This document shows, piece by piece, positions 5,207-32,513 of a stretch of DNA of 64,000 bases; positions within the stretch are counted from its first letter, which is position 1; every line of letters begins with the position of its first letter. The notes beneath the pieces were generated by a model. It saw only the letters and a program-made list of their open reading frames with translations, made no database searches and had not been told where the DNA came from. The DNA is taken from the sequence record NC_041916.1; one strand, given 5' to 3'. A program made the position numbers and the translations under genes.

Positions 5207-8200
5207 CTAGATTATCGTCGCCGAACCTTTCATGGTTACGGTGTCATCGACGATACCCACCGGTGGTGAGTCTTCCGCAATATCAATACGGATTTCGAAC
5301 GGCTTCGGTAAGACCTCACCATTTTCAATCAGAATGTATTTGTTGGACGATTCATCCACGTTCACACGGTTAATGGTAATCAAGCCATCGATGACCTCGA
5401 CGCTCACTTCTTCGTAGTAAGAGCCAGTGTAAAGAATCATGTCTTTAACACCCGCTTGGTCCCAAGGACCGATTTCTACGTCAAAGAGTTTAGAACCACC
5501 GTCTACCGCACTTTGGTTGTAGTTGTAGTTATGACGATCGTACAGACCGACAGGCATGCTGCTGATCGGGTTACCACGTTGATCGATCACTTTACCACTG
5601 ACGTTGAACAGGTCGCCTAGGGCGATACCAGTTGCTTTAGTCAGCTCAGAGAACGACGTAGGTAACAAGATGCTGTCCGAAGACCAGTCTACGTTATGTT
5701 CATCACGTTTGCCAGCGTACACTGCAATAGCGGTTACACGATCACGGTCAACGATGTAAGGAACTCGGAATGTTGCCACGCCGTATTCATCTGTTGTCGC
5801 TTTCGCGTTCAACACACCATTGCCTTCGATAGAGATACCGAACGTACCACCAACAACTGGGTTACCCAAGTTATCTTTAAAGCCGTACGCCAAAGTAGCT
5901 TCTTTACCGAAGTGTAGATCAGAACTGCTGTAAGGTGCAGGATGCATCACCACGTTGTCGTGGTAGCGTACTGTGAGGTCACCCATGCCGATGTCATTGT
6001 CACCCGCTGGTGTCAACTTCCAAATAACTGTATCTTCTGCTCCGTGAGTCAGTGTTACTGTCCAGTTACCTTCAGTGTCAATGACACCTTTAATAACCGC
6101 ACCGCTTACTGAGTTCACTGCATCAAATTCAGTTTCCTCTGTAGGAGTAAATGGAGTGCCATCCAACTGATGCGCTGTACCCGTTACCACCATATCTGAG
6201 TTGGTTGTCCAGAAGTCACTTAGGTACTCTGATGGACGTAGGTCAGCCAACACCATAGGGCGAGCGTTCCAAACCACTTGTTCATTTTGATGGTGCATGT
6301 TCAATGCGAACACTACGTTGTTAGTCCCTTCTAGGAATGGACCGTAAGTTGCGTTCAACATACCGTCGCTGGTCAGGTTGTCTGACAGATCAACCAATTC
6401 CAGTTTCTCTTTCGAGAACACAACCGCCCAACCATTTTCAGCAGACTGGTTACCGTTTTGTGTTAACACGGTACCGTTGACGCTTAGTGGGTTAGGAAGT
6501 TCGGCTTGACGGACGATATTCAAAATACCGAAACTTGCCGGGTATTGTTCTGAATCGTTGACTTCCACCCAAGTAATGTAACCCTCGGACTTAGTATCAC
6601 CGAACACAGACTCGACATTATCGTTCTCAACAAACTCACCCCAACGTAGGGTAGATTCTGCGATACCGAATCGGTCAGTACGTACTTTGCTGATTGGTAC
6701 GTTAGGGAACGCATTCAGTCTAAACTCTACTGTGGCGTTAGGAACCCCATTGCCTGCTGCATCTTTAACGTAAGCCGCGATGAACACGTCTCCGCCTCGG
6801 ATAGCAGCGTCTTGAGAGTATTTAGCGTACGTGACTGCCGCACCACTGATGAACTTAACTGCTTTAGTAGCAATGTCTTGTCCATCTTTCACAAAGCTGT
6901 AGTGCCATTGACCGTCACTGCTTTGTTCCACTGGTATTGAAATCGTACCATCAGGCATCGCCCAAGCAGTACCGAACTCAACATCGTCAGTACGACGGTA
7001 ACTAACTTCAACCGGACCTTGGATACGCATACGTTGTTCACCTTCTTCAGGTGTCCAGCGCATAAGCTTACCATCGATCAACGTTTCCGCACCAGTGCCT
7101 ACTACCTCGGCAGTATCAGTTGGGATCATCCAACCAATCGCTGCGTATTGAACAGCCGGAGCTGACAACCAAGTGATCGTTCTAGTGAACTGAGAAGACT
7201 CAGTGTAGAACGCAATGTCGTGTTCCCCTTCTGATTGTGCTGCCAAATGTCCGTAGAACATCTCGCGGTCATTATCGTGCTTGGTTAACGTTACAGTTTG
7301 TAGTGTACGTTTGTTAAACGCTGACATAGCTGTAACCGGAACGTAACGATCGTTAAAGCCACCCATCGCCACTGCAACAACTGCATCTGAGCCCGCACCG
7401 ACTGTGTCAGTATGGTCTGACCAACGAACCATAACAGGCAAGCTGTAATCGTTCTTAGTCCAGTTGATGGTATGTTCTTCATTGAAGTCATTGGTGTAAC
7501 TAGCCAGTACTTTGATGTCGCCATCCCAGTAAACTGGTACCATTTGAACTTCGCCGAACACGGTGGTTTCTTTTGGATTCTCATCGTTGTCCGGAAGGAT
7601 GAATTCAGCAATACCGTTTTCATCAGTAAGAACAGTTTGTGACTGTAGACCCGCGTAACGCAAACTGATGGTTACAGGGATGTTAGGTACAGCGTTGCCG
7701 TACTCACCCATGGCAGCAATTGCTACAAAACCTTGTTCACGGTAAACCTGACGGGTGTTAGAGTAAGGTAGTACGCGAAGACCTACTACTGGTTCGGCTT
7801 CACCAACCCACTCGATGGTTTCTTCACGAATGTCATAACCTGTTGCGAACAACAGATGACGTGTTCCATCCCAAGAGCTTCCGCCTGCGATTGTTGCTGA
7901 CAGACTACCGTCACCGCCAAACTCGTAATAAGGAGGACGATGATTTACGTCAGACGCTGTACCACAGTCAACGTAATCGAACGAACCTTTATCAAAGATA
8001 AAGAAGTGTTCAGTCGGACTACTTTCACCTGCTTTCGCGCTCACGCCAGTGGTCAGTCTTACTTCACCACGACCATAACCGATTTGATCGATAAACGTCA
8101 CATCAATTACATCAGCCATTAGTGGATCAGTTGTACCAGCATCGTACCAAGTCACCGTTTGAGTTCTAGGCTGTGCCTCAACAAACACACTCGCCACACC

Positions 8201-21486: not shown

Positions 21487-22623
21487 TTATTCCTCGTTGT
21501 CTGGGGTTCTGTTTAACCATGCTTCACGGTCGTTGGTATACATTTCATTGCCGTCTTCATCAACCACAACAAATCCTGCACGCTTAGGGTCGTCTTTCAA
21601 CATATCCGGTGAACCTAGTGTCACGACGTTCTCTACTTTGACCGGTTCACAGATTTCCAATTTACTGCACGCGGATTCGATAGCTTTTAGCTGGTCAGCA
21701 GATAAGTTCAACTTATGTTGACCAATAGTAAAGTCAGGAGACTTAGCCCAATGCATTTCCAGCTCGACGGTTCCACGTTCATCTAAGTACTTCTGGTATC
21801 CCGCGTCATCGATTATTTGGACCGTCGGAATACACCCACGAAGTTTACTTAAACCCGGTTCCCCTACTCGGGTGAGTCGTCCCATCATCTGAATGTTATT
21901 TCGGGTTAACACGTCTTCACCAAAACAAGATTCCATCACTTCCCCATAGGACGGGTAACGTGTGAAAATAATGTTTCTCATCCAAGTGCAGTACTCAGTA
22001 ACACGCAACGTCACCCACAAGTCTTCTGGATAAGCCGTGAAGTCCGCCATCCACGCTAAGGAGTATTTCGTTAGCGGTTTGTTGGAATACTGTTGGTAAC
22101 GACGACGGTAACGAGTCAACAAACGACGGTGAACAGTTTTAGTGTAGTCACGGAGCCATTTGTGTTTATGACGAGTGTAAGTGTCTGGGATAGTGTACCA
22201 CTCCACCATGTGGTTGTAGAACTCAGGTTTAGGTACCCCGAATTCTTCACACATCCATTCGATCAAAACCATGAAACGAGGATGCGGATTTAGAATACCA
22301 ACTTTACCGTATTCTAAAAGGTCTAGTGTTGAACGACACTCTGCTTCTTCCAGCTTCCAAACCTTACAAGGGTCGTTAGGATAACCAGTCGGGTAGATGG
22401 TGTCGTAGTACTTACCTTCGAACTCCAACAAACAGTGATGTGGGTGAGAAACCATATTGACTTCAATACGGAACTTCTCCTTTAAGATGTGTTGCACTAA
22501 AGTTGCAACCATGTAGCAGTAACCTGTGTTAAGGTCTTGAACTGCACGGTGCGGTTTGTTGTTGCAGATCTTCGCATAAGCATCAACAGTTTGAAATAGT
22601 AGTTCAGTGATTTGTTTGTGCAT
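21487..22623 (-). CDS. Protein with an N-terminal putative Cys-His-Asp (papain/transglutaminase-like) domain, 378 aa
   Basis: LNTGYC...HPHH...YYDTIYPTG; paralogous to the N-terminus of 22695..23255. Confidence 0.6.
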   Translation of the reverse strand: MHKQITELLFQTVDAYAKICNNKPHRAVQDLNTGYCYMVATLVQHILKEKFRIEVNMVSHPHHCLLEFEGKYYDTIYPTGYPNDPCKVWKLEEAECRSTLDLLEYGKVGILNPHPRFMVLIEWMCEEFGVPKPEFYNHMVEWYTIPDTYTRHKHKWLRDYTKTVHRRLLTRYRRRYQQYSNKPLTKYSLAWMADFTAYPEDLWVTLRVTEYCTWMRNIIFTRYPSYGEVMESCFGEDVLTRNNIQMMGRLTRVGEPGLSKLRGCIPTVQIIDDAGYQKYLDERGTVELEMHWAKSPDFTIGQHKLNLSADQLKAIESACSKLEICEPVKVENVVTLGSPDMLKDDPKRAGFVVVDEDGNEMYTNDREAWLNRTPDNEE

Positions 22624-22694: not shown

Positions 22695-23255
22695 TTAATT
22701 ATAAAGTGACTTAACGTGGGTCACTTTGGCTCGTTCGCCGTCGGTTCTGTAGGAGACCTCGACAGGGTAGAATTGATCTAACGTGAAAGCAATGTCCTTA
22801 GGAATCTCTGGGACTTCCCATGTTCCATCTGGAACAGTCCCTGAGAACAACAAAGGTTCCACCTCAAATCGTTTACAACATTGTAAAACAATATGATAAA
22901 TATCCCCATCCCACGGCTGAAGATTGAAGTTACCAATCAGCTCAGCTGAACGAGCGTATTGGTAAAACACTTCATCCAGCTCAAAGATGGACCCATTAGG
23001 ATACAACGTATCGAAATGATTGTTGTCGTACACTATGAAATAATGACTTGGTGAACACATCACATGACATGTTTCACCGTAACGCTCCTTCATAATGTGT
23101 GCGGTCAACATCGCGACCCACAGGCATTCGCCGTTATTGAGTTTTACTATGGTCTCTTCCCACGCACCTATGTTGTGATAAGCACGATAGGTTGCAGTGA
23201 TCTCATGAAAGATCTCAGAGATTCTAGAGCGGAATAAACTGAAGTGATCAGACAT
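22695..23255 (-). CDS. Putative Cys-His-Asp domain protein, 186 aa
   Basis: LNNGEC...SPSH...HFDTLYPNG aligns by eye with the 378-aa neighbour. Confidence 0.6.
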   Translation of the reverse strand: MSDHFSLFRSRISEIFHEITATYRAYHNIGAWEETIVKLNNGECLWVAMLTAHIMKERYGETCHVMCSPSHYFIVYDNNHFDTLYPNGSIFELDEVFYQYARSAELIGNFNLQPWDGDIYHIVLQCCKRFEVEPLLFSGTVPDGTWEVPEIPKDIAFTLDQFYPVEVSYRTDGERAKVTHVKSLYN

Positions 23256-23643: not shown

Positions 23644-24399
23644 TTAATCCTTCTTCTCAGTTTCTTTGGCTTTAGACTTTTTCTTAGCCTTCTTAGCCGG
23701 TTTGCCTTCTTTAGGTTTCTCGATTTCCGGTTTGGTTAGTCCGGTGATTTCGTACAAACGTTTCTCGTAACGATCGCGTAAGTATTTCTGTTCTTCGGGA
23801 TCTAGTTTATTCGAAACCTCCTGAACCACCGTACCATCCGAGTGCAGCACTCTGACGTTCCCACCGATGGTTTCATCTACTTCAGACCGTAATACCAATT
23901 TCAAAACCAACAACACGTCGTAAGCGGTTACCGTTTTATCACCAGTAATCGCTTTCATTGTTGCTGAGAACGTCTCGGACCCAGACCCCGCCACAGCATA
24001 AGTCAAAGGTCTGCTAATGCGAAGTTCGTTGCCACGAAAGTCCACTTCGAAAAACTCTTCCCCGATGCGGTAAAAGATTTTAGCCAAACGGCTACTTCTT
24101 GTCGATAGGTGAATCAACTCCCGTTCCCAAACCCCTTCCTTGAACTCCTTAAGACCAAATAGTTCCAACCAATCTTTAGGGTCTAAAGTGTGTCTAAAGA
24201 TGAGGGCAGTCGAACCACATACCGCCATGAAATCTGGTTTAATACGAGTCCCGTCTTCTTTAACATAATCAGGTGTCAAAGTCGGAGTACGGATGATCTT
24301 AATTCGGTCATTATTGTACTCGTCATTAACAGTTGGTATCTCGACGGTCTCTCTTGAGTCAGCAAAGAAATTGCCTCGGTGTCCCACTATTACTGTCAT
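23644..24399 (-). CDS. Ntn-hydrolase, HslV/proteasome-beta-like, with a Lys-rich tail, 251 aa
   Basis: Thr at position 2 (MTVIV...FADSR), a Lys in RIKII and an AVAGSGS motif; tail KPAKKAKKKSKAK. Confidence 0.65.
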   Translation of the reverse strand: MTVIVGHRGNFFADSRETVEIPTVNDEYNNDRIKIIRTPTLTPDYVKEDGTRIKPDFMAVCGSTALIFRHTLDPKDWLELFGLKEFKEGVWERELIHLSTRSSRLAKIFYRIGEEFFEVDFRGNELRISRPLTYAVAGSGSETFSATMKAITGDKTVTAYDVLLVLKLVLRSEVDETIGGNVRVLHSDGTVVQEVSNKLDPEEQKYLRDRYEKRLYEITGLTKPEIEKPKEGKPAKKAKKKSKAKETEKKD

Positions 24400-25040
24400 T
24401 GGTGTTTCTCCATAGCTTTATCGAATAACTCCAACCAATTATCAATGTCCGATTGCTCATATTTGGTTTCGGATAAAATGCTTGTGCCGGTTTCTGTTTT
24501 AAAAAGTGCTGTCATCTTAGGTGTGGTGGGCTTTAACTTTTGCACCATCGCCCAAGAGTACGTTTCCACCGGACAGTCTATTCCGAGAATTGACGCTGAG
24601 TCAGAGTATTTATAATCAGGGTCGACCAACCATCCACCTTCGGCTAAAAACCGGACCTCAAAGGTTTCACTGTCAATTGAGATCTCGACGACACGGTCAT
24701 TCTCACACAACCCATAGTAGGTCAAAGTAGGGAGTTTGGTGACCACTTTAAGAGCGTAAGCGATTCGATGTTTCCCGACCTTAAGTTCTGTCTGACGGAA
24801 AGCCCAGAGGATGTCATCGATTTCTGTGGTGTTCCAGTTCGCTGAAGTATCGTCTGTTACCACCGCTCCCCACAACACCTTAGTTTCTTGTTCCTTGCCT
24901 TCATCGTCGGTGTACTTGATCGGTAAGCGATCTTTCCATACCGGTGCACCAAACATTAAGTTCGTTACCCAAAAGTCTCCACCGAGTTCATGGACACTTT
25001 CAAACAACACTCCGGTTTTATCAAAACACATTAATGGCAT
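24396..25040 (-). CDS. Hypothetical protein, possible inactive paralog of the Ntn-hydrolase, 214 aa
   Basis: ATGA overlap with the Ntn gene; weak similarity by eye; no N-terminal Thr. Confidence 0.6.
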   Translation of the reverse strand: MPLMCFDKTGVLFESVHELGGDFWVTNLMFGAPVWKDRLPIKYTDDEGKEQETKVLWGAVVTDDTSANWNTTEIDDILWAFRQTELKVGKHRIAYALKVVTKLPTLTYYGLCENDRVVEISIDSETFEVRFLAEGGWLVDPDYKYSDSASILGIDCPVETYSWAMVQKLKPTTPKMTALFKTETGTSILSETKYEQSDIDNWLELFDKAMEKHQ

Positions 25041-25043
25041 AAC

Positions 25044-25478
25044 TTACTCCTTTTCACTGACTGCGAGCGCACAGATGATGACACGGTTAATGGCTAACGT
25101 GCTAGGACGTCCTCCTAATGAACGATTGACCGTGATCACTGCGGTGGTTGTTTCCTGAGGGTCTTTCATACTAAAGCGTTTACGGACAAAAGAGAGTCTT
25201 ACCATATTAGGTTGAGGGTAGGTAAAACTTAATGCTTTATAGATAAGCAAAAGTTTGTCTAATCCTTTCTCGGTAAACAACATTTGCAAGTAATAGTCGC
25301 GTTGACCAAAGTCTTCTTCAGGATGACCGGAACAACTTTGATGTGTGGCTAGTTCATTGCTAGCATTGATTGCTTTAATGGCTTCCAACATATCTTGGTC
25401 GAAGTTACGCAATCTTAGGAAATCAGTGACCTTATTTAGTTCACTTTGCTTTTGGAAAAACATGGGTGCGGTACGCAT
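25044..25478 (-). CDS. Hypothetical protein with a THQSCSGH motif, 144 aa
   Basis: AAGGA RBS; motif resembles the TxSCxGH/TYW3-like small-domain proteins seen in phages. Confidence 0.6.
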   Translation of the reverse strand: MRTAPMFFQKQSELNKVTDFLRLRNFDQDMLEAIKAINASNELATHQSCSGHPEEDFGQRDYYLQMLFTEKGLDKLLLIYKALSFTYPQPNMVRLSFVRKRFSMKDPQETTTAVITVNRSLGGRPSTLAINRVIICALAVSEKE

Positions 25479-25514: not shown

Positions 25515-25534
25515 GGTAGGACCGAAGCCCTACC
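25515..25534 (-). terminator. Intrinsic terminator after thyA
   Basis: GGTAGGGC-TTCG-GTCCTACC followed by CTTTTACTTTTT. Confidence 0.75.
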
Positions 25535-31299: not shown

Positions 31300-31746
31300 T
31301 TACTTAAATAGTTTGCTTGCTAGAGTTTCGTTTGTAGCACGTTGCTCTGCCAGCCAATCTGAAGCTTCTTGTGTGTGGATGAAATCTGTCATTGTAGTGC
31401 TAGCACCGTACAATGATTCGTCACCCACTTCGCTACGGAGAATGTGTTCAGAATTGAATGTGACACCCGGTATAGTTAGCGTGCCTTCTACGTTGTTGAT
31501 TTTGTCGTTCTCTGCATAAAGATTACGAGTAATTTCAGCAGTCGCAACTTCAACAGCACCGCTCACTTGGTTCATGAAGTTTACGTGAGCTTCCATGGAT
31601 TCACCAGTAATACCTTCCGGCATTTCTAGTTTCTCCGAATCGAACACCACTACGTTAGTACCTTTGTTGTACTCGTGATTCTTAGTCAGAGACTTAACTA
31701 GGTTAGCTTGTAGTTCGTCGTATTTAGGAGCTTTAGTATCAGACAT
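31300..31746 (-). CDS. Hypothetical protein, probably highly expressed early, 148 aa
   Basis: Has its own promoter and terminator; GAGG RBS; strongly biased codons. Confidence 0.8.
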   Translation of the reverse strand: MSDTKAPKYDELQANLVKSLTKNHEYNKGTNVVVFDSEKLEMPEGITGESMEAHVNFMNQVSGAVEVATAEITRNLYAENDKINNVEGTLTIPGVTFNSEHILRSEVGDESLYGASTTMTDFIHTQEASDWLAEQRATNETLASKLFK

Positions 31747-31819
31747 GAGTTACCTCGATATAGTTTTAGTTAATTAAAAAGGAACGTGGTACGGTTCCCT
31801 AGACGCTGTGGTCTTTGTT

Positions 31820-31843
31820 CACCTAAGTTATATAGGTTCAAAA
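31820..31843 (-). promoter_or_regulatory. Putative early promoter
   Basis: TTTTGAACCTATATAACTTAGGTG. Confidence 0.78.
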
Positions 31844-31847
31844 TATT

Positions 31848-32513
31848 TTAAGAAACTACATTAAAAACAGAACAATCCATTTTGGTGATATCTTTCAGTA
31901 CGTCGAACAAGTCCAGATAATCACGTTCAATGACTACACCCATCGCTATATTCCAGAACGCTTCACGACGCTCAAACATAGCGTTAATCATTGATTCATC
32001 CAAATCAGATAACACCATGGCTTCTGCGTAATCCATGTCACACAAATCGTGTTTACGCACTGCGTAAGCGAAAGTGAGTGTAGCCAATTCGAAAGGATTG
32101 TTGTTGGCGTAATTAGCACGTCCCACCAACCATTGGTCGTAACCCACTACCGTTGACATAATGGTGTTGAACGCACGCTCAAATGTCAAATCGCTAACTG
32201 CTGCCAAACGTGAGATAGTAGAAGTGAAACGTTCAGATTCTTCTACGATCATTTCGTCACTGTAACCGTTCAGTGTTTTGCCTTTAGCGTTCAAGCTAAG
32301 TTTAAGGACAGCTGCACCAAATGATTTCAATGATTCAGTTTTAAGGTTAGAGAACGCCACACCTTCGATTAAGTGGGAACCACTGGAGCGGTCACGGTAG
32401 TTTTCCCACACGCCTTTCGCACTATCATGAATCCCTGCCAGCACCATAACTTCGCCACGAACAGCGGACATAGTAGAAACCAAGTTGAGTTTCTGTACGT
32501 ATGTAATTTGCAT
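31848..32513 (-). CDS. Hypothetical protein, 221 aa
   Basis: AAGGA RBS; helical-looking; no motif recognised. Confidence 0.7.
   Translation of the reverse strand: MQITYVQKLNLVSTMSAVRGEVMVLAGIHDSAKGVWENYRDRSSGSHLIEGVAFSNLKTESLKSFGAAVLKLSLNAKGKTLNGYSDEMIVEESERFTSTISRLAAVSDLTFERAFNTIMSTVVGYDQWLVGRANYANNNPFELATLTFAYAVRKHDLCDMDYAEAMVLSDLDESMINAMFERREAFWNIAMGVVIERDYLDLFDVLKDITKMDCSVFNVVS

Follow-up and report, generated by a model that had tools for sequence, protein, structure and literature searches.

It has been previously reported that the catalytic set of the proteasome consists of Thr1, Asp17, Lys33, Gly47 and Ser129, and that proteasome-like proteins of phages are known from sequence censuses, none of them with a defined function (PMC8665760). 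The same work, a census of 2021, describes the phage and bacterial group-I homologues HslV, BPH, AAH, CPH and PPH as being without insertions and without S12/H5, and reports that H5 pairs subunits of different layers in Anbu, that in proteasomes it makes the double beta layer more stable, and that HslV, BPH and Anbu are homo-oligomers. In addition, a jumbo phage is reported to have HslV-like genes without HslU (PMC7823757). Here we describe two adjoining genes, gp173 and gp174, in a stretch of 64,000 nucleotides (nt) of sequence record NC_041916.1 (the window). We found that gp173 belongs to a divergent proteasome-like family (the A family) with a conserved catalytic set, and that its partner gp174 belongs to a family (B) of full-length paralogues from which that set has been lost.

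The DNA is 100% identical to that of Vibrio phage pTD1, a jumbo phage of the Gorgonvirinae (Tidunavirus) with a genome of 239,276 base pairs that holds exactly one A gene and one B gene, both recorded as "hypothetical protein". pTD1 has a chimallin gene and falls among the nucleus-forming Chimalliviridae, and its close relatives phiKT1028 and phiKT1019 have been assayed experimentally for nucleus formation (PMC10587174). An earlier note, made from the sequence of the window, had described two open reading frames (ORFs) of 251 and 214 amino acids (aa) that overlap at an ATGA, and these are present exactly as claimed. Neither the gp173 family nor any pairing with a dead paralogue is described for phages in the literature that we searched.

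Fold and catalytic residues of gp173

An AlphaFold2 model of gp173, built with its relatives as the alignment, reached a predicted local distance difference test score (pLDDT) of 82.5 and a predicted template modelling score of 0.77. A Foldseek search of the PDB with this model returned at least 500 matches with E <= 0.001, and the matches listed were proteasome subunits throughout. The model superposes on these subunits as the four-layer alpha-beta-beta-alpha sandwich of the N-terminal nucleophile (Ntn) hydrolases, and the structures nearest to it are those of active beta subunits, Anbu and HslV. In particular, residue 2 of the model pairs with residue 1 of the mature chain in active beta subunits, HslV (1m4y), BPH (5ovs), Anbu (5loy) and connectase. 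The Ntn fold that the earlier note had predicted for the 251-aa protein is thus directly supported by the structure search. Membership of the gp173 family among proteasome-like Ntn hydrolases holds at the level of fold and superfamily only. Sequence and profile searches of the PDB with gp173 or gp174 gave nothing but noise, ESM Atlas gave no more than a lead for gp173, and the profile phrog_1040 ("peptidase HslV family") reached gp173 itself at an E-value of only 0.12. The same profile was matched by 9 of the 15 family members, every match starting from residue 1 (best P0014, E 2.5e-7, residues 1-151).

Conservation within the family follows the residues expected of a threonine hydrolase. All 18 A-family proteins start with Met-Thr, and T2, D14, K34, G62, G138 and S139 are the same in every one of them, at identities to gp173 of 26 to 90%. 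The hallmarks that had been read from gp173 by eye, namely Thr after Met removal, the Asp of ADSR, the Lys of RIKII and the AGSG motif, are conserved across the family, with G140 present in 17 of 18 members. By motif order and conservation, D14, K34, G62 and S139 would be the counterparts of proteasome Asp17, Lys33, Gly47 and Ser129. There is no earlier in-frame start in the gp173 ORF, so that a propeptide is impossible. Methionine aminopeptidase accepts Thr at the second position, and as gp173 is without a propeptide, this enzyme alone would suffice to expose the Thr. Taken together, these results support gp173 as a highly divergent proteasome-like Ntn hydrolase whose modelled fold carries an intact catalytic set, and we predict that it is an active peptidase.

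The model also contains elements beyond the catalytic core. A confidently modelled extra hairpin (the S3/S4 insertion) lies between the Lys34 strand and Gly62, and towards the C-terminus strands 182-185 and 192-195 are followed by a long helix, residues 201-219. The protein ends in a lysine-rich tail that is predicted to be disordered. The earlier note had pointed to this tail as strongly basic and possibly able to bind nucleic acid. The lysine-rich tail is indeed there, but its charge varies: over the last 25 residues, 11 of the 18 A members have a net charge of +5 to +8 and the remainder one of -6 to +1, the tail being basic in Tidunavirus and several metagenomic relatives and acidic in Aphroditevirus. 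Because the charge is not conserved, nucleic-acid binding is unsupported as a conserved function, and we rejected a conserved basic tail as a nucleic-acid-binding element of the family.

gp174 and the pairing of A and B genes

Alignment of the A profile (18 sequences) with the B profile (17 sequences) by hhalign gave a probability of 96.3%, an E-value of 1.5e-9 and a score of 67.5 over 208 columns, with A 1-218 aligned to B 1-213; the match thus spans residue 1 through the C-terminal helix. Reversed and column-shuffled B profiles scored at most 17.6, so that the real score is about four times that of the best null. Earlier and smaller alignments of the two families had reached a probability of 92% and an E-value of 6.3e-7 over 166 columns. 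The segments that the earlier note had set out as parallel between the two proteins turned out to be exactly the stretches that hhalign aligns. In searches with single sequences, BLASTP of gp173 against gp174 was not significant, tblastn with gp173 matched a B1 gene of phiKT1019 at E 1e-4, and a further genome search gave E 0.003. Furthermore, the gp173 model matched a 211-aa protein of phage 2 TSL-2019, which has the length of B1, in BFVD (E 2.6e-5), and secondary-structure elements follow one another in parallel order in the gp173 and gp174 models. The detectable relatives of gp174 are confined to the A family.

The catalytic set is absent from B. As had been noticed earlier, gp174 begins Met-Pro, and across the family the position of the nucleophile is held by Pro, Ser, Ala, Lys, Gln or Gly and never by Thr. 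The positions of Asp and Lys show no conserved residue, and Gly-Ser-Gly has given way to an Asp-Pro-Asp-like stretch. The model of gp174 itself is weak (pLDDT 62.5); a fold search with it returned no significant match, proteasome alpha subunits occupied much of the sub-threshold lists, and ESM Atlas gave no lead. We therefore take the Ntn fold of gp174 to be probable from its homology to gp173. These comparisons support gp174 as a full-length, catalytically dead paralogue of gp173 that would have arisen by duplication within the phage lineage, keeping the same fold and then losing every catalytic residue. The suggestion that the pair resembles an active beta and an inactive alpha subunit was right in that the partner is homologous and without every catalytic residue, but gp174 is not alpha-like, because its alignment with gp173 begins at residue 1 and no N-terminal extension precedes it. 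We thus rejected gp174 as a 20S alpha subunit: the nucleophile is absent, but so is the H0 extension, and a lineage-specific dead paralogue of the beta type describes it better.

We compared 13 loci, from nine phage isolates that infect Vibrio or Photobacterium together with several contigs from metagenomes. B precedes A with an overlap of 1 or 4 nt at 20 of 20 junctions, and all A genes but one directly follow a B gene. pTD1, VP4B, phiKT1028 and Aphrodite1 have a single B-A pair; most relatives (2 TSL-2019, PDCC-1, phiKT1019, USC-1 and the loci L016, L018 and L019) have the doubled cassette B1-A1-B2-A2, in which both A paralogues retain the catalytic set and both B paralogues are without it. 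B-A pairs are thus gained or lost as units. The A1 clade is moderately supported in trees (85/93); Tidunavirus may have lost a pair or may never have had a second one. Aphrodite1 differs from other Aphroditevirus members in its single pair, and its B gene is unannotated in GenBank and RefSeq (record 31512-32135; locus L024 3360-4004) despite an intact ORF of 214 aa.

The family is narrowly distributed. It was found in just 15 of 50,697 phage records, and an exhaustive HMMER search of 1.84 billion representative proteins returned just 11 relatives, all of 231-255 aa. Word-index searches gave close relatives only, and scans of IMG/VR gave known isolate genomes or nothing.

Proposed assembly, alternative readings and surrounding genes

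We consider it reasonably probable that an active proteasome-like threonine hydrolase (A) is made together with, and assembled with, its dead paralogue (B), and that the phage supplies no unfoldase of its own. Host methionine aminopeptidase would take off Met1 of gp173, and the exposed Thr would then serve as the N-terminal nucleophile, with Asp14, Lys34, Gly62 and the Gly-Ser139-Gly loop in support. Because the two genes are translationally coupled, the proteins would be made together and in similar amounts. By analogy with 20S proteasomes, A and B most likely form a hetero-oligomer of active and dead subunits, to which the long C-terminal helices may contribute as H5 does in Anbu; the doubled cassette would supply most relatives with two active and two dead subunit types. 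The earlier observation that no ATPase is adjacent extends to the whole phage, since the 239-kilobase pTD1 genome contains no match to Pfam AAA (PF00004) or AAA_2 (PF07724), for which the control genomes all matched. Without an AAA+ unfoldase of the phage, the particle would cut unfolded or loosely folded substrates and peptides alone, or else borrow a host unfoldase such as HslU. The genes lie near those for thymidylate synthase, dihydrofolate reductase, an HD phosphohydrolase and a Nudix protein and away from the head genes, which argues for a role in intracellular development and not in virion maturation; that role would be host takeover or the turnover of particular proteins.

Several observations weigh against this proposal. 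PF00227 of Pfam matched neither gp173 nor any of the 15 members, nor anything else in the pTD1 genome, and NCBIfam, its HslV models included, matched no member of the gp173 family; Pfam, NCBIfam and PADLOC were likewise without a match for gp173 or gp174. We attribute the failure of PF00227 to sequences too divergent for the model, and the gp173 family would then be a lineage that standard domain models miss. The metagenomic locus L016 carries a third, unpartnered A-type gene (6223-6882, 219 aa, starting MTIIVG, E 1.5e-11 to the A profile), 526 nt downstream of its B1-A1-B2-A2 cassette. As this gene has no adjacent B, A may act without a dedicated B.

The L016 gene would fit the possibility that gp173 forms a homo-oligomeric ring of the HslV kind and that gp174 is a regulator, for instance one that inhibits or caps the ring, adapts it to substrates, or chaperones its assembly in place of the missing propeptide. 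The homo-oligomeric state of HslV, BPH and Anbu would also fit, as would the greater divergence of B, whose own invariant Trp, Pro and Asp residues could form a distinct binding surface. However, B retains the register of the A fold over its full length, including the C-terminal helix, and strict one-to-one coupling with duplication as a unit is more typical of stoichiometric subunits; we regard a regulatory gp174 as unlikely. It appears quite improbable that the pair is non-degradative, whether as a specific processing enzyme, a connectase-like transpeptidase or ligase, or a small-molecule amidohydrolase tied to the nucleotide-metabolism neighbours. The nearest structures are active beta subunits, Anbu and HslV and not connectase or small-molecule amidases, the full proteasomal Thr/Asp/Lys/Gly/Ser set is conserved, and the synteny with nucleotide metabolism is limited to one phage subfamily and is not invariant there.

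An A-B assembly might instead act mainly on host proteolysis, docking host HslU or another unfoldase and either redirecting it, towards host or defence proteins, or sequestering it. Vibrio hosts carry HslUV, and both the absence of AAA and AAA_2 matches from the phage genome and the matches of family members to the HslV-family PHROG would agree with such docking. gp173, however, has the S12/H5 elements and the insertion that compact HslV lacks, and we consider this reading, which we grade as speculation, very improbable. That gp174 is unrelated to gp173, its profile match an artefact and the two merely neighbours of unrelated function, we regard as extremely improbable, because the insignificant BLASTP comparison and the empty structure and ESM Atlas searches with gp174 are outweighed by the end-to-end profile alignment far above its nulls, the tblastn, genome-search and BFVD matches and the parallel order of secondary-structure elements.

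Among these readings we thus favour the co-assembled pair of active and dead subunits. With rather less assurance, we suggest that the virus may have independently re-invented subunit specialisation, and that the pair may form a hetero-oligomeric, ATPase-less compartmental protease of nucleus-forming Vibrio jumbo phages that remodels the host or phage proteome. Both the sorting of proteins and the takeover of the host are under active study in nucleus-forming phages, the group in which gp173 and gp174 occur. The system consists of two genes, the close pTD1 relatives phiKT1028 and phiKT1019 have been cultured and imaged, and the predictions are clear.

A nuclear-localised protein of the "HslVU family", gp116 of Erwinia phage RAY (bioRxiv 10.1101/2023.02.24.529968), was considered as a functional lead and set aside, as it is an HslU-type ATPase and not an HslV homologue. 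RAY gp116 (locus L020 11353-13062) is 569 aa long and contains AAA_2 and AAA domains; neither of the two 179-aa genes that follow it has a match in Pfam or any relation to gp173 that could be detected.

The features of the region are collected in Table 1. In pTD1 the genes are tightly packed in the order dihydrofolate reductase, HD phosphohydrolase, thymidylate synthase (ThyA), gp175, B, A, Nudix, small Cys-His-Asp protein and large Cys-His-Asp protein. This order is largely common to the relatives but is not invariant: the flanks vary and the B-A pair is constant. Beside the pair of phiKT1028, gp175, the Nudix gene and the small Cys-His-Asp gene are missing, and L016, which differs further, is also without an adjacent Nudix gene. 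All of the compared phages are related, and the synteny may therefore be mere inheritance. The earlier note had suggested that the pair might form, with the Nudix and Cys-His-Asp genes, an early proteolytic or anti-defence module. We found no support for a defence or counter-defence module beyond synteny in one phage subfamily, synteny that the phiKT1028 and L016 loci break, and did not retain it. In PADLOC only the Nudix protein had a match (candidate family PDC-S07), and gp173, gp174, gp175, the Cys-His-Asp proteins and the other neighbours had none.

Table 1. Features of the gp173-gp174 region of pTD1 (positions in the window)
Feature	Position	Strand	Basis
gp173 (A subunit), 251 aa, divergent proteasome-like Ntn threonine hydrolase, predicted catalytically competent	23644..24399	-	
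Thr2 codon, predicted N-terminal nucleophile once Met1 is removed	24394..24396	-	Met-Thr start throughout the family; model superposition
Asp14 codon (ADSR motif), putative counterpart of proteasome Asp17	24358..24360	-	18/18 members; equivalence inferred from motif position
Lys34 codon (RIKII), putative counterpart of proteasome Lys33	24298..24300	-	18/18 members
Gly138-Ser139-Gly140 codons (AGSG), putative counterpart of the proteasome Gly-Ser129-Gly loop	23980..23988	-	G138 and S139 in 18/18 members, G140 in 17/18
Lysine-rich C-terminal tail of gp173, residues 227-251, predicted disordered	23647..23721	-	pLDDT <50
gp174 (B subunit), 214 aa, probable full-length, catalytically dead gp173 paralogue	24396..25040	-	hhalign
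ATGA, gp174 stop overlapping gp173 start	24396..24399	-	Read from sequence
GGAG, ribosome-binding-like motif within the 3' end of gp174, 8-nt spacer to the gp173 ATG	24408..24411	-	Read from sequence; function inferred
AAGGAG, ribosome-binding-like motif, 6-nt spacer to the gp174 ATG, overlapping the end of gp175	25047..25052	-	Read from sequence; function inferred
gp170, 378 aa, Cys-His-Asp protein	21487..22623	-	
gp171, 186 aa, Cys-His-Asp protein	22695..23255	-	
gp175, 144 aa (phrog_7413)	25044..25478	-	
GC-rich hairpin with T-rich tail between thyA and gp175	25515..25534	-	

The Cys-His-Asp pair that had been noticed beside the locus is real: gp170 and gp171 have a common N-terminal domain with the invariant motifs N-x-G-x-C, H-H and D-T. 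Small and large paralogues of this kind flank the Nudix gene in most relatives, and further examples lie at L002 5720-6289 and 6677-7939, L018 2730-3347 and 3735-5402, and L019 5762-6349 and 6812-7963. Their only link to a family is a weak one to Pfam Phage_YunG-like (reached by 4 of 10 members, the best at E 3.4e-4), and a sequence search of the PDB gave no match. In most relatives gp175 is the gene immediately upstream of the pair, and in L016 it is found downstream; its N-terminal part resembles TYW3/Taw3 methyltransferases only weakly (Pfam E 0.011). The hairpin between thyA and gp175 could end the thyA transcript and so set apart a unit of gp175, gp174, gp173, Nudix and gp171; terminator-like sites are no more numerous in the region than in shuffled sequence. 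The thymidylate synthase gene, intact in pTD1, is in two pieces in phiKT1028, where a gene that is annotated as a homing endonuclease has been inserted (L006 2253-4294).

Comparison with known systems

Like PPH, AAH and CPH, gp173 is a proteasome-like protein of tailed phages with an N-terminal nucleophile and no assigned function (PMC8665760). PPH, however, has about 140 residues and is without H2, and all three are compact, with neither insertions nor S12/H5 and with no paired dead paralogue described (PMC8665760); by their published descriptions, the gp173 family would be set apart from them. The differences from HslV (ClpQ, about 175 aa) are of the same kind. At 251 aa gp173 is about 70 residues longer and is not a compact subunit, as it carries the S3/S4 insertion and the S12/H5 elements that are absent from HslV (PMC8665760); moreover, there is no HslU in its genome, and its pairing with a dead paralogue is obligate, in contrast to the homo-dodecamer of HslV. 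The spacing from the catalytic Lys to the Gly is 28 residues in gp173 (K34 to G62) and 14 in proteasomes.

The long C-terminal H5 helix is Anbu-like, and the alignment with Anbu reaches gp173 residue 222. Unlike gp173, Anbu is bacterial and homo-oligomeric, and no link to it was found at the sequence level, where no search with an Anbu profile was made. Transglutaminase-like proteins are encoded in Anbu operons. Compared with the active beta subunits of the 20S proteasome (beta1/2/5-type), gp173 is without a propeptide, has the S3/S4 hairpin insertion and is without a dedicated ATPase. Compared with the 20S alpha subunit, gp174 lacks the H0 helix at the N-terminus and is apparently a recent duplicate specific to this lineage, not an ancient alpha subunit. 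The obligate pairing of an active protein with a dead paralogue, duplicating as a unit, would thus offer a small, recent and tractable analogue of the specialisation of 20S proteasomes into alpha and beta, and into active and inactive beta, subunits.
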